Numbered from the whole stretch's first letter, positions 48,076 to 62,245 are shown. The stretch: DNA of 63,667 nt, filler included, from Ministeria vibrans ATCC 50519 (GCA_943704425.1; 4 parts of 4 records of this genome joined end to end with filler, not necessarily neighbours in it), one strand, 5' to 3'. Notes: generated by a model not told the origin, from the letters alone. Numbers and translations: made by a program.

Positions 48076-48131
<56 letters not shown>

Positions 48132-48219
48132 CGAGAGAGAGACAGAGAGAGACAGAGAGAGACAGAGAGCGAGAGAGAGAGAGAGACAGAGACAGAGAGA
48201 GAGACAGAGAGGGAGAGAG

Positions 48220-48320
<101 letters not shown>

Positions 48321-48504
48321 TGATAGAGAGAGAGGAGGAAGAAAGAAACAAAGTGATAGAGAGAGAGAGAGAGAGAGAGGAGAAAGAAAGAAACAAAGTG
48401 ATAGAGAGAGAGAGAGAGGAAAAAGAAAGAAACAAAGTGATAGAGAGAGAGAGAGACGTGACAAAAAAGAAAAAAGAAAAAATTAATGAGACTCAATGAG
48501 TTCC

Positions 48505-48739
48505 TTTCCTTCTGCCAACGGCAACCCAGGCTCCCTCTGGGGGGTGACCGGATGCGTCTGGTGCTGCTGCACCTGCAGTCGGTCGTACCCTGCGCCTGCA
48601 GCGCCAGTCCTTTGTGGATGGCCTTCTTCGCCTCAATCTTCCGCCGTTTCTGTCGCTTTTCAGGCGCCTGCAGCCGCTTCCTCGGCACCGCGTTCGCCGA
48701 GTCGTCCAGTGGCAGTGGCACTCCTTGGTGACGCCCCAT
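48505..48739 (-). CDS. Possible first exon of an unknown basic protein (truncated at scaffold end)
   Basis: MGRHQGVPLPLDD..EKRQKRRKIEAKK ORF running into a microsatellite intron. Confidence 0.35.
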
Positions 48740-48848
48740 CACAGTCAGCAAATTTGTAAAAATAATCTGAATCTGAGAAAGTGAGAATGATCAATGAAGA
48801 AACTCGAAACTCGAAAGTCTCAACGTTATTCGTTTGTTCGCCTCACGC

Positions 48849-51800
48849 ATGTCTGCCTGTTATCTTGATAATCCTACGGAAAGGCCTCATGCACCAGCCC
48901 GCCTTTCGGGGGCCCGCTTAGCACCCTTTGAGCAAACTCCGACCAACACATTTACACCAGAAAATTCAAGAGCACCTTCCGCCGCCACGTGCTCCCCGTT
49001 TTCCATTGCGGCAGATGGTGCTGGATCCGAAAAAACCTCTCCCTTTGGTGTCAAGCTCAGATCAGTCACAGGTTTCGAGATTTTTTGAGAGAGTGAAAAA
49101 TTGAAATTTTTGGTCGAAACTGATTCCCCGCCTCTCCTCGCCCTCTCCTTGCCTTATTGCCCTCCTCCTCTCTCGGCAGCCAAGATACTCCAAACGCCAT
49201 GCTCACCGACAGGGACACCAAGCAGCGCCCGGGATCAAACAAAGCCGGCGCCTCCGCCCGTTGCGCCTAAACCCAGCGGAACGTTCCGCAAGCAAGCGCC
49301 CGCTCAACATTCCTCGGCTACTAGGCAGACTGCACCGCCTCCCGCCTCTTTTCGTCCCCAACCAAGCCGCGCGCCTCCCCGCTCAGGCTCTACTGTGTCT
49401 TCTCTATCGTCGAAATTCGACTCTCTGTCGCTGTCGAAGCGTCAATCCTCACCTACTGCGCCAAAGCCGAAGCCGAAGCCAAAGCCAAAGCCAACGGCAC
49501 CAGCAGCGTCAAAGTCCACCGCAGTCAACGATGATACAGATGCTCTCTCTTTGCTTGACAGCACAACTCGGCGTGCCTACGAGTTACTCATGCATCAAAC
49601 GACGGTGCAGGATTGTGCTCAGTGTGCCATTCGCTTGGCACCCGCAAAGCAACTCGTGCAAAAGGTTCTCGAGGGGGAGGTCGAACTGGCGCGCGCGCAA
49701 GACCAAATTGCCGCCGAGAGTTCCTTCTCGGTACAGATGCTGCAGCAGCGCGATCGCACGCGCGCTCTCCTCATTGAGTCAATCGGACAGCTGTTGAAGT
49801 CAATCTCTCGCGAGAACGTGTCCCAAATACAAAAGGATGCGTCCAAGTGGCGCACCGAGACCATGTCGTTGCTTATTACCTTATCAGAAGACCATCACTG
49901 GGATGCCGCGGCCCCAGCAAGTCACAGTGCCACGAAAGCGCCCACTGTCCTTGTGCTTAGGCAATGGCGTGAGAAAGCTCTCGCGAATAACACAATCACT
50001 CCGGTCCCCTTTCCATACGAAGATGTCGAGATTGCACTGACCGTGCTGTGGTGTGCAACCAACGAAGTGGTCACTATTGCCACAGAAGTGTTGGCGGCGA
50101 TGAAGCAGGGCTTCAAAGTGCGCAAGGGTCTGGCGAGCGCGCACGACGCGGGGCCACCGAGCACTGCGCGTCTCGACGAATTGACAGCCGTGTACGAAAA
50201 GGCCCTGTTTGACCGTCGCATTGTGCAGGCTCACATTGCATACCACAAGGACACGGCCAAGCAGGGCGAGAGACACACGCAGGAGCGAAAGTATCGTGCC
50301 CAGTGCCAGTGGGCACTGGACGAGCGTCGTAAGGAGCTAGTCAGTCTTGCACAGTACGCCCAGACGCACTATCCCGAGGCACTTGTGAGCATGAGTGTGC
50401 TGCGTGAGCACGTACAAATACTCTCTGGCGACCGAATGGCCTCGGACCGCACTTTTGACGAGTACGAGTGCATTGGCGTGCCCCTTGCGGCTTCCCCGCA
50501 CGTTGTGCACCGTGTTCGCTTCAACGGCACCGACCATGTGCTCAAAGTCTACGCCCTTACCAGTGTCGCCGCGCAGCGTGTGCTCGCCCGCGAACTCCGC
50601 ATTCTTGCACGTCTCTCGCACCCACACGTCATTCCCATTGAGACGAGCTTTGTCGAACGCAACATGGCCTACGTCCAGTTTCCCTACTATCCAGGTGGCT
50701 CGCTTGCCGTCTGGCTCGCCACACATACAACTACCGTCGGCACTATGAAGCGTCTCGCGCTCATGCAGGAGCTTCTTCGAGCCATTGCGGTAAGGTGTTT
50801 TCCTCATGGCTTCTGTATAATGATCTTCCATATTGCATGTGCAGCACATTCATGGACAGCGAGTGGTGCACTGTGACATCAAGCTTGAAAATGTGTTTAT
50901 GACAAGCAACGCCGTCGAGTCTGCCCATGTGGTTTTGGGAGACTTTGAACTGAGTCTGGCGTTGGGCGGTGGACACGGAGGCGCAAGCGTCATGATGGGG
51001 GGAGGAAGCAGTGTCATGTCAAGCGTGTCCGTCTCTGGGCGAGTGGGGGAGACGCAGCGCGGCACGATGGGGTACATGGCGCCTGAACTAGTGAAGGCTC
51101 AGGGGGGGTGCACGCTAGAGTCGGACATGTACTCATTTGGAGTGCTCTTGCGCAAGGCTATGCAAGGAGTTCCGATGGAGGAGTGTCGAGGCACACAGGA
51201 ACTGATCCATGCCCTGCTCAGCGACAACCCCAAGCAGCGTCCAAGTGCCGCGCAGTGTCTGTTGCACGAGTCTTTCTCACTTGACGCCGCACGCAAAGAA
51301 GCAACGCAGCGACTTGACCGGGAGTTGGAACGTGTTGCAGTCGAGCAGAGACGTCTGGCCAGCGATCGTGCTAATCTCAATGCAGACCGCGCGCGTCATG
51401 CCCAGGCCACTCATAAGAGTGCGGCAGAGGCGGATGCACTGCGCAAACGCGAACAGAGCATTTGGAAGGCTCAGGAGGCATTTGATCGGGACACAGAGAG
51501 ACTGCGCCAGCAAGAGGAGCAGCTCAAAGAGGCAGCAAAGAAACTTGTCGTACGTCGATCGACACACGTTAACACCAGTCAATGACCCAGATTATAATAC
51601 GTAATGCTCCGTACACTGTTGATTGTTTTTATGTGACTTTATAGGAAGAGCATCAGACTCCGCCGTACTGGGAGACGTCCATGACGGTGAACGAGGACAT
51701 GTGGATGCACGAGTTTGATGTGACAGGTGAGCTGGCGGCGTCTGTCGAGATGCTCATGAACGCCACTGCTGCGCCCGAGACACACTCCATGCGTCTGCGC

Positions 51801-52569
51801 GACCGACAGGCGAGAAGATTCCAGCGATTCCGAGTTCAGCGAGTAGTTCGTGTAGAAAACGCGCGACTGTGGCGGGACTATGCAAACGAGCGGGCGTCGA
51901 TGCTTGTGCGGTGGCGTGCAGGCGCAGATCTCGGTGACCACGGGAGCCTTGCTCAGAGGCTGCAGACAACCCAGACGGCCCCTGCGTCTCTGCATGCCGG
52001 GCATCTGCTGAGTGCGGAGGCCAACGAGGCGTTTCTCTTTCACGGGGTTCCCTCGGTCAACATTGCGGGGTTGATTCGACAGACGGGATTTGAAGAGAGA
52101 ATCGCACGAAGCGATGGGAATATGTTTGGAAAGGGAATCTACTTTGCGGAAAGGTGAGCGTTCTTTTCAGTCTGGCCATTGCTATATCAGTACGTCATTC
52201 TATGTAGTCCATCCAAAAGTGACCAGTACACAGGGGATGCGCCTGTGCTGCACATGCTGCTGAGTCGCGTGCTCCTTGGTCGCCCGCACGAGACCGTCCG
52301 CTCGCAAAGGACGCTCACTCGTCCACCCTGCATTCACGGCCACGACGTACCGATAATGCTCATCAGTCATACGCCGTCCTGAGTATTGTACGTACTAAGA
52401 AGGTTCTTTTCGTTTTCTATAGATATGCGAGCACATTCGATGCGACAGTGTGGTTGCGCTCTGCAAGCAGGACGATCCACGTGCAGACTTGAGCCTCTTT
52501 CGCGAGTTTATTGTGTATGACCGCCGCCTGACTTACCCCGAATATTACATTGAGTACACGAGAGAGTAG
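48849..52569 (+). CDS. Protein kinase - coiled-coil - PARP catalytic domain fusion, multi-exon
   Basis: Kinase: HVLKVY, RELRILARLSHPHVI, VVHCDIKLENV, LGDFEL, GTMGYMAPE, SDMYSFG. PARP: PPYWE, VVRVENARLWRDY, NEAFLFHG, MFGKGIYFAE|SPSKSDQY, MLLSRVLLG, FREFIVYD..YPEYYIEY. Confidence 0.85.
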
Positions 52570-52685
52570 ACGTTGCGTAGAACTTTCGAAAACCGATATT
52601 ATTATGATTAATAATAATTATTATTATTCATTTGACATTGAGTGCACAGCTCTCTATTCTCTTTTATTCTATTAAATTATTATTA

Positions 52686-52830
52686 CAATTGCGTCCAAAG
52701 CCCAATAGCCTAATTCGTTCATCATGTTATATGACTCAGCCGCTTCAATTAAGGCGCCAGGAAATAACACCCCATCAAGAGGATGATTCCAGCGCAACAA
52801 GCACTCTGCACCAATAATTTTTAAGCTAGC
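52686..52830 (-). pseudogene. Fragment of a bacterial EAL (c-di-GMP phosphodiesterase) domain
   Basis: KIIGAECLLRWNHPLDGVLFPGALIEAAESYNMMNELGYWALDAI closely follows the EAL consensus I.GAEALLRW.HP..G...P..FI..AE..G.I..LG.W.L; no start or flanking exons. Confidence 0.75.
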
Positions 52831-53119
52831 TATTCTTATTATTATTATCCCCTCCACTTCAAGCCTCGAAACCCCGCTCTCGGAGCTCGAAAGAACGAAA
52901 AGGTGTTATTCTTATTCTTATTATATTTTATTATTGTTCTTCTTCTTATTATTATTATTATTATTACTATTGCTTTGGAGTTTTCTTTCGTTTCCTGTTT
53001 AGTCATCCATCGAACTAAATTCTAATGAAACGTCAATTTTTTGTTTGCTTTCTTGCTTTAATCAAGTATTTGGGCAAGTCCCAACTTGTTGCGTGGTGAG
53101 GTCGTGACTGATCTCAAAC

Positions 53120-53900
53120 ATGGAGGTAATCGGTTGTCTGTCTCTTTCACGTCTCTCACTGTCAAACATGTCGTTTTCAGAAACACCCGAAGCAACCGGT
53201 TCGTGTGATGGTTGGCTCGGGACGACCAAGCCGTACCGTGCCAGGCATACAGCGCCGCTCCTCGGCCGCATCGCCGGCGCCGGCAAGCGCGTCGAAACAG
53301 ACGCAAAGGGCAAGTTCAGGAGAGCACCGCGCACCCGTTGCGCTTGTCGCTGAGGTGCGTGCAGTCCAAGCCCCTCTTGGCTCTCTCTCACTCTTCTACC
53401 CCCCCGANNNNNNNNNNCCCCCCCCCCCCTCTCTCTCTCTCTTGCCACAGTTTGCTTCGTGCGTCATGCGGAAAGAGTTCGCGCGCGCAGTGCACCTTGG
53501 CGACGCCATTCTGGCACTGGAGCCCAACAATGCGTTGGTGCGGGAGTACCGCGATGTCCTTATGGACAGTGTCGTGCTTGAGCAACTCAACAACGACGGC
53601 ACCACTACTGGGGAGGAGAGTGACGAGAGCGACGACAGTGCATCTGGGTCAAGCTCGAACGACCAAGACTCAAGCGAATCAGCCGACACCAACGACGACG
53701 ACCTCTGCTCAACGGAATCGGACGGCAGTCACAAGGTATACGACGACGATGAGTCGTCGTTTTCGTCGTCCGATTCGTCGCTCACGCCCTCGGAAGAGGA
53801 AGAAGACTCCGAATCGGAGTCACTACCACCTGAAACGAGTGACAACATTGCAAAGCGACGCGCGCGCCTACTGAAGATGCTTGAGAACCCACCACCATAA
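53120..53900 (+). CDS. ERICH2-like glutamate-rich protein
   Basis: RAPVALVAE|FASCVMRKEFARAVHLGDAILALEPNNALVREY followed by an acidic D/E/S tail. Start uncertain. Confidence 0.6.
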
Positions 53901-53965
53901 CAAAATCAGATGGAGAAAGAGATAGAGAGAGATAAAGAGAAAAGTACAACAAATGTATATGTGTG

Positions 53966-54779
53966 TTATGAAGAGAGGCTGTCAAGCGATGCAATGGCAG
54001 CACTGGAGGGTGCCAGACCCGCTGCGGTCGCATTGAAGTCAAGGGCTGCAAACAGCGGGTGGTTGTCTGCGCGGATGACGTGTGGCCCCAGTAAGTGGTC
54101 CACATAGGCAGTTTTCTTGTCACGAGCGGCCGTTTCGCTGACGGGTGTCCACGACTGATCGTACTGAGACGAGAGAGAGAGAAAAAAGAGAGTAAGACGG
54201 GGCAAAAAGAGACAAAAAGCGATTGGAATGAACAAGATCCCGTTGGAACGAGCGAGATCGCATTAAAACACGCTCTTGCTCCTCCTCTGTACACACACAT
54301 ACCTCTAGGCGGAAGGATCCTTGGAATTCGTGTGCAGCGCCGGGACCAGAAGAGCCCCAGTCGTCCGGACCGAGCATCGAGATGTAGGGGCTCTTGGTGG
54401 CTGTGCCGTCGTCCGTGTCGACGACTGCTTTGCAGTACAGGTGGTACACGCGTCCAGGGTGCTTCTTGAAGTTACACGCGGCCTGGTGCAGCTTTGCGTC
54501 GCGTGCTGTGGCCGCCAGAACCTTCTTGGCTTCTTCTTGCAACGCACGCATCTGATCGACGATCGTCTGCAGCTTGCCACTGGCGCTGGCTCGCAGCGTT
54601 GCATCGGCGTGCTGTATCTCGTGAGCCAGATCGACAAGGTGGTCGCGGGGTGCCCGGGTTGTCTCAGATGTCGTCAGTGGACTTGGCAAGTACAAATCGG
54701 ACAATTGCTGCGTTCCCAACGACACCACGGCGCCCTCCTTGCCGTACTCCTCACGGGCTCGTTGCAATGATTCTTCCAT
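53966..54779 (-). CDS. DUF2452 / C1orf50-like protein
   Basis: LVDLAHEIQHAD..KLQTIVDQMRALQEEA..LHQAACNFKKHPGRVYHLY..SMLGPDDW..FQGSFRLE|YDQSWTP. Confidence 0.85.
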
Positions 54780-54959
54780 CACAAGAAGAGTTGAAATAAT
54801 TAATAATATAATTATTGTAATTTGTAGCTGAAGATCGGCGAAGTGAACTTGAAGTAGTGAGTTAATCGATCGATCGATCTACTCATTCGTCATCCAAAGT
54901 GTCACCCACTCTGTCATGGGACATGGGTTCAATATTCTTCTGCCGCTTGCAAGAGAGGC

Positions 54960-55837
54960 ATGGAAGACGAAGTCGTGGAGTTGTTCCCGCCCGAGAACTA
55001 TGCGCTGGTGGCGCCGGGCGTCTATCGCTCGAGTTTTCCAACGCGCAAGACGTTTCCCTTTCTCGAGAAGCTCGCGCTGAAAACCGTCATGTACAGCACG
55101 ACCCAAGACGCGTCTCTGCGTGCCACCTAATGATGCTGCTCTCTCTTGTAGATGTCTTGTTGAGGAAGAATATCCGTTGGTAGGACGAGAGAGAGCCAAA
55201 ATGTGTTTCGTGTGTGTGTGTGGCGTTAGGAAGAGCCTTCAACGCTCGTGTTCCACGCCCATCGTCGAGCTGGTGTTTGGCTGGGGCCCACATGCGCATG
55301 GCATCGGGTTTAAATGGCAATGTGTTGTTTTTGCAGGCAAATCGAGAGTTTCTCGAGACGCACAAAATCCGCTTGAGACAGTTTGGCATGCCGGGAAACA
55401 AAGAGTTTGAAGAGGTGCTCGAGGATCGCATTATTGCCGCACTTATGGTTGTATTGGATGTCACCAACCACCCGCTACTTATCCACTGTAACAAAGGAAA
55501 GGTAAGACGTGCTGAGCATCATGGGGATGAAATCAGCACCACCTAACAACACGGTGTGTAGCATCGGACGGGGTGTCTTGTGGGAGTGCTAAGAAAGGTC
55601 CAACGGTGGTCTCATACATCAATTTGCGACGAATACAGAAGGTAGAAAGGAAGAAAGGGGAAGAAACATCGAGATTAATGATTGTGTACTGTTTCTTGGT
55701 TCAAAACAAACTGTAGGTTCAGTCTTCCAAAGGACCGCACTCTCGACCAGCAATTCATTGAGCTGTGCGACATCTCTCAGTTGACATTGGACCGTCGCAC
55801 AATACCCAAGTGGCTCATTCACGTAGTCTCACTGTAA
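54960..55837 (+). CDS. Atypical dual-specificity phosphatase, Siw14/PFA-DSP family, multi-exon
   Basis: FPPENYALVAPGVYRSSFP; GMPGNKE; NHPLLIHCNKGK|HRTGCLVG..QRWS..DEYR|RFS..DQQFIE. Confidence 0.9.
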
Positions 55838-55885
55838 GTTATGTTTTCATTGTAAATTATTCCAGTTTGCTTCTTTATTCTTTGT

Positions 55886-58633
55886 CTAATGGGAGAACGT
55901 AACAATGGAAACGGCAAAGGGAGCAAGAACGAGACGGTTTTCAGTAAGAGATTCAGTGCGAGCGGGACCATCAGCAGTACTAAGGTCAATGGTCGCGACT
56001 GAGGAGCCACTGAGCGACTCAGAGTGACTCAGTGACACTGACTGACTGAATTGCGTTTTGTTGAGCACGAGCAGTTTCTTCTGCTGCTGTCCTGCCGTGA
56101 CGAATCCCTGGCAGTATACTCCTGAAGGCACGCTGAACTCCGTCTCAACAAGTTTATCTTAGAACATGGGTAGAAAACGTAAGTGCACGTCACACTCGTC
56201 ACTCTCGTACCTCCGACGTGAAAGTGCTCCCTGAGCATTCGAAGGGTCCAATAACGGGCGTTTCCTTCGCCAGTGGTCCAATTGGTCATGGACACACTCG
56301 GATACTGCGGAGCACTAATGTCATACTGTGGCATTGCCGGAACGCCCGCAAGTTGGCTAAAAAGAAGTGACATCAAAAACTCTCGCGTCGCTCCCACTTT
56401 GTTTCCCTTCTCCCTCCTCTCTCGTTCTTTCTGTACCTTTCGCCGATGATTTCAAGGCCATACTGGATTGAATTGGCCCAGGTGTAGGCAAACACAGCTG
56501 AAGCGGCATTGTAGTACAGCGCTGGCGGGTCAGACTGGTTCGGAGCATTGTCTGGAAACGCGCGCAAAAGAGAAAACTCCGTGAGTGAGTGTGCGAGGGA
56601 ATGGGCAACGAGTGAATACCATCGGGGAGAATAACACCCATTTCCTCCACATCGGCGACGACATGGGGTGCAATTTCATCACGAATGCGGAGAATATCCC
56701 TCATTTCGGTGAAAAACACGTCAGCTTGATCAAAGTAATCGGGAAACGTCGAGATGTTAGTGCGACTGAGGGCAATGGCATAGAAATGGAAGGAAAAGAG
56801 ATTGAGCGGTAGAGCGCTCGCCTTGTGGTGCGAAGCATCGAGGAAGTAGCGGATTTGCGACTGGTTTCGAGTTTGAAGCTAATGCATAAGTATGTGGGTG
56901 AAAGGAAAAGACAGAGAGTGAGCGAATATGTGCCATGCAAATTGAGTGTGTCATTGAGGTGTAAGTGAGTGAGTGTGCGTGTGTGTGTGTGTGTGTGTGT
57001 GCGTGCGTGCTTGGTGTGATTCGTGTGCTTAGCGTGTTACGGAAAGGCCGACGAATTGAATCTTGTGATCGGGGTCAGCAACGCGACGAACTTCAGTGAC
57101 AATGGCATCGTACTGAGCAACGTACTCCTAATAAACACAAACGATCGAGTGTGTGAGGATTTGCTGAATATTATGCAGATTGACGCAGACGCCAAATCAT
57201 AGAACAGACAACACTCACTACCCTCGCAAATGGGCTTTCTCTTTATCACTTTGTTTCTCTCTCTTTCTTTTCTCTCTCTCCATCATTTGTTTCTCTCTCT
57301 TTCTTTTTCCTATCACTTTGTTTCTCTCTCTTTGTTCTCTCTCTGTTTGTGACTGCATACTTCAATTGTCAGGTCGTGACACCCAATGGGCTCATTGTAC
57401 ACCTCCCAGTGAGTGATATTCCAATGGTATCCATTCTTGTGCACTTCTCCGTATTCGTCTGTAAACTCTCCCTTTGTCAGAAATGAGAGAACCCGCCCAT
57501 AATACTCCGCAATCTACAAAACAAACAATGAATCGTTGTTCCGATTTTTGTTCTTGGTTTGTTACGAGTTTTGTTGAGTCTTTTCGTTGAGTGCCCTTTG
57601 GGTAGTCCCACATCACTTGGTTTGGGTCAGCTGGGTAGTTCCAGTCGTCCGTTTCGTACATCCAAGTTGGAACGGTAGACAGATTGGGAATCCGAATGTG
57701 TCTGCGTGCACCAATCAGTCAGTATCTCTTGTGTTGTTTGGGTTCTCTCCCATTTGCGCCTTTTACCCTTCTGTTGAGTTCCAAAACAATTCAAGTTGGG
57801 GTCGAACCTCAGACCAGTCCCAGTTCGAGTGGTTCTTTGGGTTTGTGCACAGCGCACGGACCGATAGTTTTTCTGTGGGCCACACAAAATCAACAACTCA
57901 CATTCACTCGTTCTTTTGAATACTGTTCAATTTGGGACAGGGGTCAGCAATGCCCAGTTCCAGAGGATCAGTCGGAATAGTGCATTCTTCGCGGCCGATG
58001 CAGCGCGAGCGCACGATTTCGGCAATGTCGGGGCTGTCACAAGTGCGGTTGTGGCGCAGGGAGGTGCAGTAGCCCGAGGGGGTGCCGTACGCCGCATCTT
58101 CCACGGTGCTGAAGACCCCCTCGCCCTCGCGGCAGCGCAGCGTCAGGAACCTGTGCGGAATGGCAAGGGAGCAGGGTCTTCAGAGAGAGCGAGCGAGACA
58201 CAGCGAGAGCGGCAAAGGCAAAGTGAACTTACGATGACTCGGGCTCTTGATCGCACACAAACAGGCCTGTAGGGGGCTTGGGCTGCGCCAGGCCCACAAT
58301 CGGGTAAGGGCACCATGCAATGTAGCGGATATAGTCGGCTTCAAGCTCGCTCGCACGCTGTGGAGAGAGACGCAAAGGGATTCACTGGTTGTGTTGTGTT
58401 GGCAAAACAAAACACCAAACCTGAAACATCTTTTTGTAGACGGGGGACGTCGAGGGGTTCAGAATGGGATTGCCCACGACCAGGTAGGTCATTTGGGTCT
58501 TGGAAGTGAACGTGTGGTGGTTCCAGTTGATGTAAATTTGAGACTCATCCGCCAGAGCAGCTCCAACGGACAGCAGCACGGCCACAAGCGCAACAAGGCA
58601 TCTAATACCCCTTGGCGATACTATGCCAGTCAT
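55886..58633 (-). CDS. Secreted GH39-like glycoside hydrolase with inserted SUEL/Gal-lectin domain, multi-exon
   Basis: Signal peptide; STVPTWMY..YPADPNQVMWDY; ITHWEVYNEP (clan GH-A acid/base); PSVSMTNWTTGEGNARYWTL; lectin segment AAYGTPSGYC..CIGREECTIP..DPCP. Confidence 0.65.
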
Positions 58634-59526
58634 TGATTCAAAGGCGGGGGGGTGTTCTTTGAAAACTGTTTGATAATTGATTTATTTGTGAACGAGTCGA
58701 AAGTACGAAATGATTTCGGCAACTATTTATGCCTGTGGGCTGTAGTGATGGTCACACCCCGGCGCGGAAGCGTTGACGACTTGTCGTGATGCCTTACGCA
58801 GTGTGCCAGGGAAAAAAAAGAAGTTTTGGTTTGCGCCGATGTATAATTATATTCGGCTGTCAGTGAGTAAAGAAAGAGCACGATGCGCAGATGCCTGAGT
58901 GAGATGCGCACCAGGAGAACGCACGCATTGACGATAGTCTCGAGAACACAACGCAATAAATAGGCCAAAGATCAAACCTAACCGAAATCTTCTGAAAATC
59001 TTCTTTGTGCTTGCCAGGAACTTGTATGAAGGGACGCGACCGCACACTCTGCATGAGAGCATTGTGGTCATGTAGAGCACCAGATTATTTATCTGTCCAG
59101 ATATGCGTATATACGTGCCACCAGGGAGCTCACAGTCCACAGCAATCTACGTTGCCTTCCGCGTGAATAGTGCGTTAATCGTAACCGATTGACAAAGAGG
59201 CATCAGGTAAGTTCGTTCTCCCTTCGTCACACATATCACGCGTAGCTCAAACGACTTACCACTATAAACTGCAAAGGTATGTAAGAATAAGTAGCCAAAG
59301 AGACTATTTTTAACTTTTCATTTGGTCGAGCAATTCATTTTTCACCCTCAAGTTTTTCTTTTCCCCTCTCCAGCCAGTCGGGTTCAAACAACGGACTCAC
59401 GACTGAGCATACTACGTCGTGTTTTACTGACCAAATGAGTACGCCTGTCTGCTGGAACGAACAAGCAACGATGGCTGTGGAAATGAGAAATCGGACGTGA
59501 GAAATTGTTGCGTCAGCACTCCCAAC

Positions 59527-59561
59527 TATAAAAGCGCCAATTCAACCACTTTTTCAATCAG
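59527..59561 (+). promoter_or_regulatory. TATA box (TATAAAAG) and putative initiator upstream of the tRNA array
   Basis: TATAAAAG at 59527-59534, pyrimidine/TCA-type Inr about 27-30 bp downstream, about 100 bp before the first tRNA; no protein ORF follows. Confidence 0.5.
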
Positions 59562-59632
59562 AAAAGTTTCGTCTTTTCTCTCCCCACTCACTTTCACTCA
59601 ACCTCCACGCACACACACTTCCACTTAAACTT

Positions 59633-59704
59633 GCCCTCGCGGTCCGATGGAACGGATTTCGCCCTTTCAATGCGAAGAAGCGAGATCGAAACTCGCCTTG
59701 GGCT
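59633..59704 (+). tRNA. tRNA-Glu(TTC), atypical or degenerate
   Basis: Anticodon arm TCGCC-CTTTCAA-TGCGA; T arm GCGAG-ATCGAAA-CTCGC; two acceptor-stem mismatches. Confidence 0.7.
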
Positions 59705-59721
59705 CTCTTTTGTTGTGATTT

Positions 59722-59792
59722 GGGACTGTATTGTAACGGTAGCATTCGACGTTAGGAACGTCGAGGAGGTGGATCGTCCCCACCCAGTCCCC
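59722..59792 (+). tRNA. tRNA-Pro(AGG), atypical
   Basis: Acceptor GGGACTG/CAGTCCC, C73; arm CGACG-TTAGGAA-CGTCG; T arm GGTGG-ATCGTCC-CCACC. Confidence 0.8.
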
Positions 59793-59850
59793 CCCCACAT
59801 CATTGTATTGTTTTGTGCATTTTGTTGTTGTTTTTGCTTATTGGGTGTGC

Positions 59851-59921
59851 GGGACTTTGTTGTAATGGAAGCATTCGTTGTTTGGAACTACGAGGCGGCG
59901 GTTCGATTCCGCCAAGTCCCC
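59851..59921 (+). tRNA. tRNA-Pro(TGG), atypical
   Basis: Acceptor GGGACTT/AAGTCCC; arm CGTTG-TTTGGAA-CTACG; T arm GGCGG-TTCGATT-CCGCC. Confidence 0.82.
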
Positions 59922-59926
59922 CCTCG

Positions 59927-59966
<40 letters not shown>

Positions 59967-60039
59967 GGTGGCTTGCCCGACTGGTGAAGGGATCGCTTTC
60001 AAGCAGCGACTTCGGTGAGTTCGATCCTCACAGCCACCA
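59967..60039 (+). tRNA. tRNA-Leu(CAA) with short variable loop
   Basis: Acceptor GGTGGCT/AGCCACC, A73; arm TCGCT-TTCAAGC-AGCGA; variable region CTTCG only; T arm GTGAG-TTCGATC-CTCAC. Confidence 0.82.
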
Positions 60040-60073
60040 CATAATAATAGTTGTTTTGGTGTAATATTTTGCA

Positions 60074-60147
60074 ACGCCCGTAGCTCAATTGGCTAGAGCA
60101 TCGGACTTTTGATCCGACGGTTGCAGGTTCGAGTCCTGCCGGGCGTG
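60074..60147 (+). tRNA. tRNA-Lys(TTT) with G37
   Basis: Acceptor ACGCCCG/CGGGCGT; arm TCGGA-CTTTTGA-TCCGA; canonical D and T arms. Confidence 0.9.
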
Positions 60148-60190
60148 CATTTGTTCTGTATTGTTGTGTTGTGTTTTTGCGGGTCTTTTT

Positions 60191-60262
60191 GGGCGTATCT
60201 TCTAATGGACAGGATGCGGCGCTACGAACGCCGCGATGGGGGTTCGAATCCTCCTATGCCCT
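60191..60262 (+). tRNA. tRNA-Arg(ACG)
   Basis: Acceptor GGGCGTA/TATGCCC; arm CGGCG-CTACGAA-CGCCG; T loop TTCGAAT. Confidence 0.88.
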
Positions 60263-60332
60263 TGCTTTTGGTGGCAAGAAATTGCGCCAAAGCGGAAAAA
60301 TTGTTTTTTTTTGTTTGGTATTGTTTTGTGAT

Positions 60333-60405
60333 GCACTGATGGCTCAATTGGCAGAGCATTGGACCGCAAATCCAACGGTTGCAGGTTCGAGTCCTGCTCG
60401 GTGCT
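60333..60405 (+). tRNA. tRNA-Cys(GCA) with C33
   Basis: Acceptor GCACTGA/TCGGTGC, U73; arm TTGGA-CCGCAAA-TCCAA. Confidence 0.88.
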
Positions 60406-60436
60406 CCCCTTCTTCCCTCTCCTTGTTGTATCATCA

Positions 60437-60508
60437 GTGTACCGTAGCTCAGTGGTAGAGCGCCGAACAATATTTCGGAGACGCAGGTTCGATTCCTGCC
60501 GGAAGCAC
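60437..60508 (+). tRNA. tRNA-like gene, probably degenerate Ile(AAT) (6-nt anticodon loop)
   Basis: Canonical D arm TAGCTCAGTGGTAGAGC and T arm GCAGG-TTCGATT-CCTGC; arm CCGAA-CAATAT-TTCGG; mispaired acceptor stem. Confidence 0.65.
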
Positions 60509-60528
60509 CCATTCATTGTTTTGTTGTT

Positions 60529-60602
60529 GCATCCATAGCTCAATTGGACAGAGCAGAGATTTTCTAAGTCTTTGGTTGGGAGTTCGAGTCTCTCTGGATG
60601 CT
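60529..60602 (+). tRNA. tRNA-Arg(TCT), intronless
   Basis: Acceptor GCATCCA/TGGATGC; arm GAGAT-TTTCTAA-GTCTT; T arm GGGAG-TTCGAGT-CTCTC. Confidence 0.85.
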
Positions 60603-60627
60603 TTTGTGTTGTGTGTTGTGATGTTTT

Positions 60628-60712
60628 GCACTCGGAGACGTTGGACGTCGACTGTGTTGGAAGCACAGTGCCTCTCTGGGGGTAGCAGGTTCGATTCCTG
60701 TCGAGTGCGCCA
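60628..60712 (+). tRNA. tRNA-Ser(GGA) with long variable arm and genome-encoded CCA
   Basis: Acceptor GCACTCG/CGAGTGC, G73 then CCA; arm CTGTG-TTGGAAG-CACAG; V arm TGCCTC-TCTG-GGGGTA; short D arm. Confidence 0.82.
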
Positions 60713-60734
60713 AATCTTGTTGTTGTTGTTGTTT

Positions 60735-60767
60735 GGTGGCTTGCCCGACTGGTGAAGGGATCGCTTT
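60735..60767 (+). tRNA. tRNA-Leu(CAA) copy 2 (cut by gap)
   Basis: Identical to the 5' half of 59967-60039. Confidence 0.7.
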
Positions 60768-60943
60768 NNNNNNNNNNNNNNNNNNNNNNNNNNNNNNNNN
60801 NNNNNNNNNNNNNNNNNNNNNNNNNNNNNNNNNNNNNNNNNNNNNNNNNNNNNNNNNNNNNNNNNNNNNNNNNNNNNNNNNNNNNNNNNNNNNNNNNNNN
60901 NNNNNNNNNNNNNNNNNNNNNNNNNNNNNNNNNNNNNNNNNNN

Positions 60944-61024
60944 TTGGAGACGTTGGACGTCGACTGTGTTGGAAGCACAGTGCCTCTCTGGGGGTAGCAG
61001 GTTCGATTCCTGTCGAGTGCGCCA
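60944..61024 (+). tRNA. tRNA-Ser(GGA) copy 2 (5' end in gap)
   Basis: Near-identical to 60628-60712, including the terminal CCA. Confidence 0.7.
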
Positions 61025-61046
61025 AATCTTGTTGTTGTTGTTGTTT

Positions 61047-61119
61047 GGTGGCTTGCCCGACTGGTAAAGGGATCGCTTTCAAGCGGCGATTTCGGTGAGT
61101 TTGATCCTCACAGCCACCC
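61047..61119 (+). tRNA. tRNA-Leu(CAA) copy 3, diverged
   Basis: Several substitutions relative to copy 1, including T loop TTTGATC and C73. Confidence 0.7.
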
Positions 61120-61216
61120 CTCGCACTCCCACAAACACATCCTTTCAACGCGCCGCAATTTTCCCGTTCCATACAGCTGAATTTGGCGGAAATCAAAACC
61201 AAAAACAACCGTAAAC

Positions 61217-61294
61217 TCCCATAGTATATAGTAGCTCAGCGGGTAGGGCACAGTGCGTATAACGCCGAGGTTGCGGGCTCGAATCTCGTTGGGA
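61217..61294 (+). pseudogene. Decayed tRNA (possibly Ile-TAT or Met derived)
   Basis: GTAGCTCAGCGGGTAGGGC D-arm-like segment, GCGTATAACGC loop, GCGGG-CTCGAAT-CTCGT T-arm-like segment, TCCCA/TGGGA acceptor remnant. Confidence 0.45.
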
Positions 61295-61405
61295 CGTCGG
61301 AGTTATTTTACAATCTTTTCGACTCAATTGCAACCCATCATTCAGATCGTAGAGCATCATTAACAAAACAAACTTTTCATTCAAAACGTTTTGGTCTCTG
61401 ACCAA

Positions 61406-61971
61406 TCAGTAGGATGGGGGATTCGGCTTTAGCTTACGCATCGAATAGTACTCAACAACCTGTGCAGGCAACTCCTCAAGAACATCCCGTGCCAGTTTCG
61501 CCGGATTTACTCCTAAGTAATTCCGGAAGGGCACAAACTGCACAATGTCACGACTTGCTGTTTTGCCACCGTAGCTTAGACGCACGTCATCTCCATCGAG
61601 CTCCTCCATCAGATCAAAATCAGCACCTACACCATAACGGATTGTTGGGGTTTGAGTTAGAGTAAGTATGAGCGAGAAGCGAGAGAGTAAGAAAAAACAA
61701 AATATACATTCTCTCTCTCGTACCTCCAACACCAACGATAATAATACTCATGGGCAGATCAGCAGCGTCTACAATCTGTTTCTTGGTCGCATCCATGTCG
61801 CCAATACACCCGTCGGTCAGGATCAGCAGCACAAGGTAGCTCTGATGAGTGCGTTCGGCTGCAGCTGCCTCACGTGCCAACATGGCTGTCCGTTGGATCA
61901 GCGGCGCAAACACTGTCGGTCCCCACAGTGTCACATTTTGCAGTGTCTGCCATTGAGAAAAATAATAGCAA

Positions 61972-62035
<64 letters not shown>

Positions 62036-62110
62036 AAGTGTGCAATTAAACTTGATAGTTATAAAGTGTATCTGGTTCGCTTACCATTGCATAGGCGTGA
62101 AGAATCCCAT
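61406..62110 (-). CDS. Copine, C-terminal vWA domain (5' truncated)
   Basis: LWGPTVFAPLI; YLVLLILTDGCIGDM..TK..IVDAADLPMSIIIVGVG; DFDLMEELDGDD; RDIVQFVPFR; LARDVLEELPAQVVEYY. Confidence 0.92.
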
Positions 62111-62245
62111 CAATTCCATTGCAATCCGGGTTCTACACAAACACACACACACACAAACGCAATCAACAACTTCTCATTACATTTCTTCCCCCTCCCACCC
62201 CNNNNNNNNNNNNNNNNNNNNNNNNNNNNNNNNNNNNNNNNNNNN

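Follow-up and report, generated by a model that had tools for sequence, protein, structure and literature searches.

A stretch of DNA from Ministeria vibrans ATCC 50519 (GCA_943704425.1) carries a long run of tRNA-like sequences between two spliced eukaryotic genes. Is this a foreign set of tRNA genes that has come to rest in a eukaryotic chromosome, as was proposed in an earlier note on this DNA, which described a horizontally acquired, operon-like cassette of phage or bacterial style? Or, is it a product of the host's own genome, and are its members working genes or the remains of them? The window, that is, the whole stretch, is 63,667 nucleotides long and consists of four parts of the genome joined with filler; the piece analysed within it is 48076-62201, about 14 kb, and the tRNA-like run lies at 59633-61295 on the + strand. 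We regard this run as probably an endogenous nuclear cluster of tRNA genes (tDNAs) of the kind transcribed by RNA polymerase III (Pol III), not a foreign operon. It would have grown by tandem duplication and anticodon remolding, and it appears to be partly functional and partly decaying.

The array and its members

Fifteen tRNA-like units, all on the + strand and head to tail, fit within 1.66 kb when the content of an assembly gap is included. They are separated by TG-rich spacers of 17-70 nt, among which the repeats (TTG)n, TTGTT and TGTGTTG recur; a (TTG)12.7 tract is present once and a (TTG)5.7 tract twice. In the window ARAGORN finds nine tRNAs at default settings, namely Pro(AGG), Pro(TGG), Leu(CAA), Lys(TTT), Arg(ACG), Cys(GCA), Arg(TCT), Ser(GGA) and a second Leu(CAA), and ten at relaxed settings, Glu(TTC) being added only at the relaxed threshold. 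The Rfam tRNA family RF00005, with a gathering score of 29 bits, has nine matches above that score in the window, and with the Gly gene recovered from metagenome contig L005 ten units are matched. The highest scores are those of Lys, Cys and Arg(TCT); Pro(TGG), Leu_1, Arg(ACG), unit X, Leu_3 and Pro(AGG) score lower. The Rfam scan of the rest of the piece gave no further family. The units and the features between them are as follows.

59633-59704, + strand: Glu(TTC)-like unit; RF00005 26.7 bits, below the cut-off of 29; probably a pseudogene
59722-59792, + strand: tRNA-Pro(AGG); ARAGORN; RF00005 43.2 bits; G1-C72, C73, A34, A37
59851-59921, + strand: tRNA-Pro(TGG); RF00005 50.8 bits; G1-C72, C73, A37
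59928-59965, + strand: (TTG)12.7 microsatellite spacer without a T4 run
59967-60039, + strand: tRNA-Leu(CAA)_1; ARAGORN; RF00005 49.5 bits; A73, G37; all stems paired
60074-60147, + strand: tRNA-Lys(TTT); RF00005 73.0 bits; A1-U72, G73, G37; all stems paired
60191-60262, + strand: tRNA-Arg(ACG); ARAGORN; RF00005 49.1 bits
60333-60405, + strand: tRNA-Cys(GCA); RF00005 66.3 bits; C33, U73
60439-60507, + strand: unit X, the 'Ile?' of the earlier note; RF00005 46.9 bits; tRNA-like, unassignable
60529-60602, + strand: tRNA-Arg(TCT); RF00005 62.7 bits; U33, A37, all stems paired; the most canonical member
60628-60709, + strand: tRNA-Ser(GGA)_1; ARAGORN; long variable arm, G73, followed by CCA
60734-60806, + strand: tRNA-Leu(CAA)_2; first 34 nt in the window, remaining 39 nt from L005
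60768-60943, no strand: assembly gap of 176 N, bridged by L005 from the European Nucleotide Archive (ENA), positions 1221-1046, reverse strand
60835-60908, + strand: tRNA-Gly(TCC), inside the gap (L005 1154-1081, minus strand); ARAGORN; RF00005 69.2 bits
60940-61021, + strand: tRNA-Ser(GGA)_2, a duplicate of Ser_1; first 4 nt in the gap
61047-61119, + strand: Leu(CAA)_3; RF00005 43.4 bits; 93% identical to Leu_1
61225-61295, + strand: decayed tRNA remnant with only A-box-like and B-box-like stretches; no Rfam match at E <= 1

As a description of a dense, mixed, head-to-tail array resident on one strand between spliced eukaryotic genes, the earlier note is borne out by ARAGORN, Rfam, Pfam and the metagenome contigs. 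Its list of tRNAs also holds, apart from the unit queried as Ile(AAT), which cannot be assigned: an interruption breaks the acceptor stem, U33 is missing from the anticodon loop (CAAUAUU), and the variable region has 3 nt. The last unit was rightly called a decayed copy, for besides having no Rfam match it folds no better than shuffled sequences (z = +0.24).

Is the array a single continuous structure? The gap sits within a 312-bp direct repeat of Ser-(TTG)n-Leu (60634-60767 against 60946-61079, 134 nt at 99% identity, spacing 312), so a false duplication of overlapping contig ends was possible. Independent metagenome contigs of the same organism were located by looking up the products of neighbouring exons; they come from the ENA samples SCHR19-1_SAMN09406007, SAMN09406010 and SAMN09406036, with a Logan contig from SRR23274242, and as L001-L007 they are 99.2-100% identical to the window. 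Contig L005 (1232 bp) extends from the copine gene to the right of the array through Leu_3 and Ser_2 and across the gap, with 99.2% identity to the window over 1046 bp. Between the gap flanks it holds exactly 176 nt, the length of the N run, made up of 39 nt of Leu_2, a 28-nt spacer, Gly(TCC), a second spacer, of 31 nt, and the 4 nt with which Ser_2 begins. Its overlap with the left flank is just 11 nt, and it was itself assembled through the repeated Ser-Leu units. Because in the fill a unique Gly gene separates the two Ser-Leu copies, the duplication is judged real and not an overlap of contig ends. L005 and L006, which come from different metagenome samples and are 99.2-99.8% identical to the window, both connect copine with the right half of the array. 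The left part is gapless from about 53.4 kb to 60767; a look-up of open reading frames (ORFs) overlapping the tRNAs gave no contigs for the left half of the array, and L007 ends at about 58799. As read from these contigs, the two sides of the gap are continuous and co-oriented, and the array runs through it.

Duplication, and probable remolding and decay

The array bears the marks of repeated local copying. A (TTG)n-Leu unit is present three times and a Ser-(TTG)n-Leu unit twice. Leu_2, once completed, is identical to Leu_1 over the whole gene, A73 included, and Leu-spacer-Lys has an 83.5% copy in the gap, the segment Leu-spacer-Gly. Identity among Lys, Gly and Cys is 74-79% (Lys-Gly 79%, Cys 74-77% to Lys and Gly), against 51-66% for other pairs. 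The two Pro genes, with 76-77% identity, differ by three compensatory pair changes. A (TTG)n tract stands directly before each Leu(CAA) (59928-59965, 60717-60733 and 61029-61045), and TTG is the codon that the CAA anticodon reads; this coincidence is probably a by-product of the block duplication of (TTG)n-Leu.

The copies diverged in a manner that kept their structure. When Lys, Gly, Cys and Arg(TCT) are aligned, all of the 84 stem cells pair, although 12 of the 21 pairs have changed on both sides; none of 500 shuffles reaches this pairing, and controls in which the alignment was slid are 24-45% paired. In every assignable intact type the discriminator suits the anticodon (Pro C73, Gly A73, Cys U73, Ser G73 with a long arm, Leu A73, by comparison with Table 1 of PMC9976931). 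The 74-nt Gly(TCC), for example, combines A73 with G1-C72, C2-G71 and G3-C70. Since the discriminator and the top acceptor pairs of each paralogue match its own anticodon, we infer selection for charging. Such a pattern would be expected if duplication had been followed by alloacceptor remolding under that selection, and it would be hard to obtain by neutral decay. tRNA remolding has been documented in nuclear genomes (PMC4981973).

About ten of the genes appear structurally intact: the two Pro, Leu_1, Leu_2, Lys, the two Arg, Cys, Gly and probably the two Ser. Most are nonetheless odd. All three Leu(CAA) copies have a variable region of 5 nt and no long arm, which gives Leu_1 a class-I shape, and they retain a class-II-like D arm and G37. 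Position 33 is C in Cys and Gly, position 37 is A in both Pro genes, and Lys(UUU) has G37. Pro(AGG) has the T loop AUCGUCC, in which A54 and U58 replace the usual U54 and A58, and the anticodon stem of Pro(TGG) contains one U.U mismatch. The Ser genes have G8, a D stem of 4-5 bp and a D loop of 5 nt. In Rfam, Ser(GGA) gives only a sub-threshold tRNA-Sec-like match (32.6 bits against a cut-off of 47), yet the fold of minimum free energy for Ser_1 is a cloverleaf that includes an extra arm (z = -3.1). The features concerned are near-universal ones: U33, 1-methylguanosine at position 37 (m1G37) in tRNA-Pro, N6-threonylcarbamoyladenosine at position 37 (t6A37) in tRNA-Lys, and the long arm in tRNA-Leu. 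To our knowledge, a cytosolic tRNA-Leu without a variable arm has no precedent outside animal mitochondria. That most copies break a conserved tRNA rule, as the earlier note held, is confirmed by structural inspection unit by unit, and on that inspection the odd traits are genuine and unusual for cytosolic tRNAs.

Four other units seem to be decaying copies. The Glu-like unit has two mismatches in the acceptor stem and one in the anticodon stem, C8 and the T loop AUCGAAA, and it folds no better than shuffled sequences (z = -0.48). Unit X looks like a pseudogene, and the 5' 20 nt of the fourth, the remnant at 61225, match the 5' part of unit X at 80%. In Leu_3, A73 is replaced by C73 and the T loop is UUUGAUC; it is probably inactive, because the change from A73 to C73 abolishes leucylation in an E. 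coli minimal tRNA-Leu (PMC9976931). The eight differences between the window and L005 all fall in or beside Leu_3 (61040-61182); Ser_2 and about 700 bp of copine show no difference.

How might such a cluster be used? A B-box-like sequence, GGTTCGANTCC, is present in Pro(TGG), Leu, Lys, Arg(ACG), Cys, Arg(TCT), Ser and Gly, and is degenerate in Pro(AGG) and the Glu-like unit. Runs of at least four T follow eight units (Glu, Pro(AGG), Leu_1, Lys, Arg(ACG), X, Arg(TCT) and Leu_3) and none follows six; such runs are expected by chance in TG/T-rich spacers. The 3' CCA is absent in 13 of the 15 units, being encoded only after the two Ser copies. In the mechanism that we propose, the cluster would grow by local tandem or segmental duplication, followed by remolding of anticodons and identity elements. 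Pol III would transcribe each gene from its internal A and B boxes and terminate at the T4+ runs in the TG-rich spacers. Where T4 is absent it would read through, from Pro(TGG) into Leu_1, from Cys into X, and from Ser_1 through Leu_2, Gly and Ser_2 into Leu_3; Pro(TGG) and Leu_1, in particular, may be read through across their (TTG)12.7 spacer. The resulting precursors, dicistronic to pentacistronic, would be cut by RNase P and RNase Z, CCA would be added post-transcriptionally, and host synthetases of eukaryotic type would charge the products. The odd features of the intact copies would then represent lineage-specific divergence in a cluster with fast turnover.

Several points weigh against a partly functional cluster of this kind. 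Several members that look intact lack a feature that is close to universal (U33; in Pro, G37; in Lys, A37; in Leu, the long arm), which could mean that the whole cluster died recently. The T4 runs, being expected by chance in these spacers, are weak evidence for Pol III termination. Covariation drawn from few paralogues cannot tell present from past selection, and the oddities, known from the genes of this cluster alone, may be either genome-wide or peculiar to it.

The alternative that survives best is that the entire cluster is a graveyard of tRNA pseudogenes, a burst of locally duplicated and disused tDNAs whose stems are intact as their decay is recent, with the working tRNAs encoded elsewhere. 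Visible degeneration affects at least four of the 15 units, the differences between the window and L005 all lie in or beside one of the copies that seem dead, and most of the 'intact' members break rules (C33, A37 in Pro, G37 in Lys, no variable arm in Leu, G8 in Ser). Rfam scores are low, 43-51 bits, for Pro, Leu and Arg(ACG). There are also precedents, as pseudogene-rich clusters are known, for example in cow (PMC2888827), and clustered tDNAs can reportedly be silenced in Arabidopsis (PMC7544208). This alternative has to accommodate the complete pairing across four alloacceptor paralogues with its 12 double changes, and the identity of Leu_1 and Leu_2 over the whole gene. It must also accommodate discriminators and acceptor pairs that were refitted after the anticodon had changed (Gly A73 with G1C2G3; Cys U73), and that refitting implies that charging was selected for, at least once the duplications had taken place. 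We consider this alternative unlikely.

A bolder form of the endogenous account is that the array is a lineage-specific cassette in active use. Its members would be true non-canonical cytosolic tRNAs (an arm-less Leu(CAA), C33 in Cys and Gly, A37 in Pro, G37 in Lys), made by duplication in place and alloacceptor remolding and transcribed partly as Pol III polycistrons; we hold this only tentatively and think it rather doubtful. If the genes are expressed and charged, the locus would be a compact natural experiment in tRNA evolution, in which neighbouring genes give rise to new acceptor identities as they are duplicated, change their anticodons and have their discriminators refitted. In that case it would also follow that cytosolic tRNAs tolerate the loss of U33, of m1G37 in Pro, of t6A37 in Lys and of the long arm in Leu. 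If they are unexpressed, this is another fast-decaying tDNA cluster, and a warning that calls of the ARAGORN type in unannotated protist scaffolds need expression data.

Surroundings and origin of the array

The array lies in an intergenic space of 2.7 kb, bounded on one side by the gene for a putatively secreted protein, whose 5' end faces the array, and on the other by the 3' end of the copine gene. Exons were searched singly, with no joined spliced model, and the immediate neighbours are the following.

58382-58633, - strand: first exon of the left neighbour, signal-peptide-like
61406-61934, - strand: last two exons of copine (Pfam PF07002), with a GT-AG intron of about 90 nt; right flank, about 110 bp from the last unit

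The flanks are spliced eukaryotic genes: a protein kinase split over two frames, an ORF with a PARP domain, DUF2452, Y_phosphatase2 in two exons, and copine. Of the two neighbours named earlier, 'GH39-like and copine', Pfam supports copine; the GH39-like gene is unconfirmed by Pfam and amounts to the signal-peptide-like exon, with a weak Apionate_lact_C match on the ENA contigs. The best relatives of DUF2452, a Y_phosphatase2 exon and a copine exon are 53-63% identical.

Several other features of the surroundings were noted. The DUF2452 gene (54120-54782, - strand) has among its named relatives an insect protein and a protein from a metagenome-assembled genome of Polyangiaceae (myxobacterial), at 44-46% identity, an odd spread for a small family. 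Between the PARP-like ORF and the next gene, 52576-53075 is AT-rich (GC 0.33) with microsatellites of TTA/TAT type, the exons being 55-60% GC, and a run of 10 N (53408-53417) lies outside the array. A (TAT)21 microsatellite (61972-62034) is located in a copine intron, and an (AC)10 tract (62135-62155) further upstream in that gene. In the 900-bp space between the start of the left neighbour and the array, a TATAAAAG motif (59528-59535, + strand) stands about 100 nt upstream of the first unit; it is too far away for a usual Pol III upstream element, and it might belong to a Pol II promoter directed into the array or to that of an unannotated transcript. Contigs L001-L007 also record population variation relative to the window, in the form of insertions, deletions and single-nucleotide changes (e.g. 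54809-54812, 56081-56083 and 56979-56980), which is usable for selection tests; the samples SAMN09406007, SAMN09406010 and SAMN09406036 date from 2018.

Could the array have been acquired horizontally? The 'phage/bacterial-style' origin of the earlier note finds no backing in the identity elements. Eukaryal tRNA-Pro has G1-C72 and C73 against A73 and C1-G72 in bacteria, and the discriminator of tRNA-Gly is U73 in bacteria, A73 in eukarya and archaea (PMC9976931); both Pro genes and Gly carry the eukaryal states. The bacterial states (Pro A73/C1-G72, Gly U73, Lys A73) are absent, the array having Pro C73/G1-C72, Gly A73 and Lys G73. On the + strand of the array there is no sigma-70-like promoter, and intrinsic terminators number 0 against a shuffle mean of 3.2. 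A34 in Pro(AGG) belongs to the eukaryotic strategy of decoding with inosine.

No donor relatives were found either. A blastn search of the array against phages and plasmids returned generic tRNA similarity for Lys and Cys only. In 7.3 Gb of plasmids and chromids, Pro(TGG), Leu and Arg(ACG) had no tRNA match even at E <= 10, and the best match of Arg(TCT) was 74-76%. The Lys family matches many bacterial and phage tRNAs of differing identities at 80-86%. Five tRNA-derived patterns (Lys, Leu, Pro, Lys/Gly and Arg-TCT) had no match in IMG/VR, GTDB genomes or JGI metagenomes, in scans with exact or degenerate patterns, of which the exact ones are insensitive to diverged relatives. A spurious ORF across Gly-Ser-Leu, searched against 1.84 billion representative proteins, gave short matches to translated tRNAs only and no related array. 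Two candidates that emerged were set aside. A Legionella donor for Lys(TTT) was considered on the strength of 86.5% identity to the tRNA-Arg(TCT) of Legionella adelaidensis plasmid 9 (L008:1500-1576), with the same acceptor and T stems, and was dropped as the body of the gene matches phage tRNA-Trp, Asn, Arg and Lys at 80-85%. Because tRNAs for Trp, Asn, Arg and Lys all share in the similarity, it is regarded as generic, the mark of a consensus-like body and not of a donor. L009, which had been found through the resemblance of spurious ORFs across tRNA genes, is an unrelated contig with three tandem tRNA-Arg(ACG) genes (149-436) about 30 nt apart.

If the array is nevertheless a functional accessory cassette of horizontal origin, the sole donor compatible with its identity elements would be an endogenised giant (nucleocytoplasmic) virus of the host, with a phage or bacterial donor as a variant. 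The architecture resembles that of chlorovirus clusters (PMC7589089). Leu(CAA), Lys(UUU), Arg(UCU) and Gly(UCC) of the set read codons that are in the minority in the flanking exons (AAA 30%, GAA 30%, AGA 10%, GGA 29%), and a foreign source could also claim the likeness of the Lys family to bacterial and phage tRNAs, were it not generic. Set against this are the absence of any viral or bacterial gene from the 14-kb piece, a GC content of about 0.49 in the array against 0.44-0.57 in its neighbours with no compositional break, and spacers made of host-type microsatellites. The empty scans of IMG/VR, GTDB and JGI, the missing plasmid matches for Pro, Leu and Arg(ACG) and the lack of bacterial identity states and signals point the same way, and we find acquisition from outside improbable. 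The sequence lends no support to a phage- or bacterium-like cassette in a eukaryote, expressed or not. Nor does it hint at the uses proposed in the earlier note, as a back-up set for stress or tRNA-cleaving conflict or as a set for import into organelles.

An organellar connection, either as a nuclear insertion of mitochondrial or plastid DNA (NUMT or NUPT) or as a nucleus-encoded set of organelle type destined for import, is still less credible. Apart from Pro(AGG), the anticodons (UUC, UGG, CAA, UUU, ACG, GCA, UCU, GGA and UCC) are a set typical of organelle and bacterial genomes, Ser(GGA) notably so, and the structural oddities recall mitochondrial tRNAs. But the tRNAs have a GC content of 46-60%, Pro and Gly are in eukaryal cytosolic identity states, and A34 in Pro is not a feature of organelles. 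Pro is represented by two isoacceptors and Leu(CAA) by three copies, fragments of organelle protein or rRNA genes are not present, and the microsatellite spacers are of nuclear type. Least credible of all is that the array was created in assembly, by a chimeric join or by a duplication falsely introduced at the gap. The Ser-Leu repeat around the gap and the 11-nt overlap of L005 might speak for this; against it stand the two samples that tie the array to copine, the fill of exactly 176 nt with its unique Gly gene, and the ungapped sequence to the left.

Comparison with known tRNA gene clusters

An endogenous cluster that is partly alive and partly decaying, which we favour, would have many parallels, as heterogeneous tDNA clusters arose many times in eukaryotes (PMC2888827). 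Those of kinetoplastids, Nematostella, Xenopus and zebrafish (PMC2888827), and of Arabidopsis, likewise have mixed isoacceptors on one strand less than 1 kb apart, local duplication and interspersed pseudogenes. The present array differs from them in being far tighter, with 15 units in 1.66 kb and spacers of 17-70 nt, in not being amplified as a long tandem array, and in the large share of its members that have non-canonical core nucleotides. The tRNA arrays of Entamoeba (PMC2652664) share the microsatellite-like short tandem repeats between genes and the presence of several tRNAs per unit. There, however, a unit holds at most five tRNAs and is repeated in long tandem arrays, which account for over 10% of a genome rich in AT, whereas here a single cluster of 15 units lies between protein genes. 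A unit of one to five tRNAs repeated many times is not present, the only internal repetition of that kind being the 312-bp Ser-Leu duplication.

Chlorovirus clusters (PMC7589089) come close in layout, with 7-14 tRNA genes, spacers of 1 to about 30 nt and no encoded CCA, and they are co-transcribed, processed and served by eukaryotic synthetases. Unlike the array described here, they lie among viral genes; this one has spliced host flanks, no viral genes and no IMG/VR matches. The operons and arrays of bacteria and phages are also dense, mixed in acceptors, confined to one strand and often composed of atypical tRNAs, but the present array has eukaryal identity elements, A34 in Pro, neither a sigma-70 promoter nor an intrinsic terminator, and no relatives found among them.

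A parallel in process is remolding, or the alloacceptor anticodon shift (PMC4981973), with which the array shares paralogues that differ in anticodon (Lys, Gly and Cys, at 74-79% identity) and the paired segments Leu-Lys and Leu-Gly. It differs from those cases in that the discriminator and acceptor pairs 1-3 were refitted and that three alloacceptors of one family stand in a single cluster. What appears to set this array apart from known clusters is therefore its density, the presence of three alloacceptors of one paralogue family side by side, and the number of rule-breaking members that look intact.

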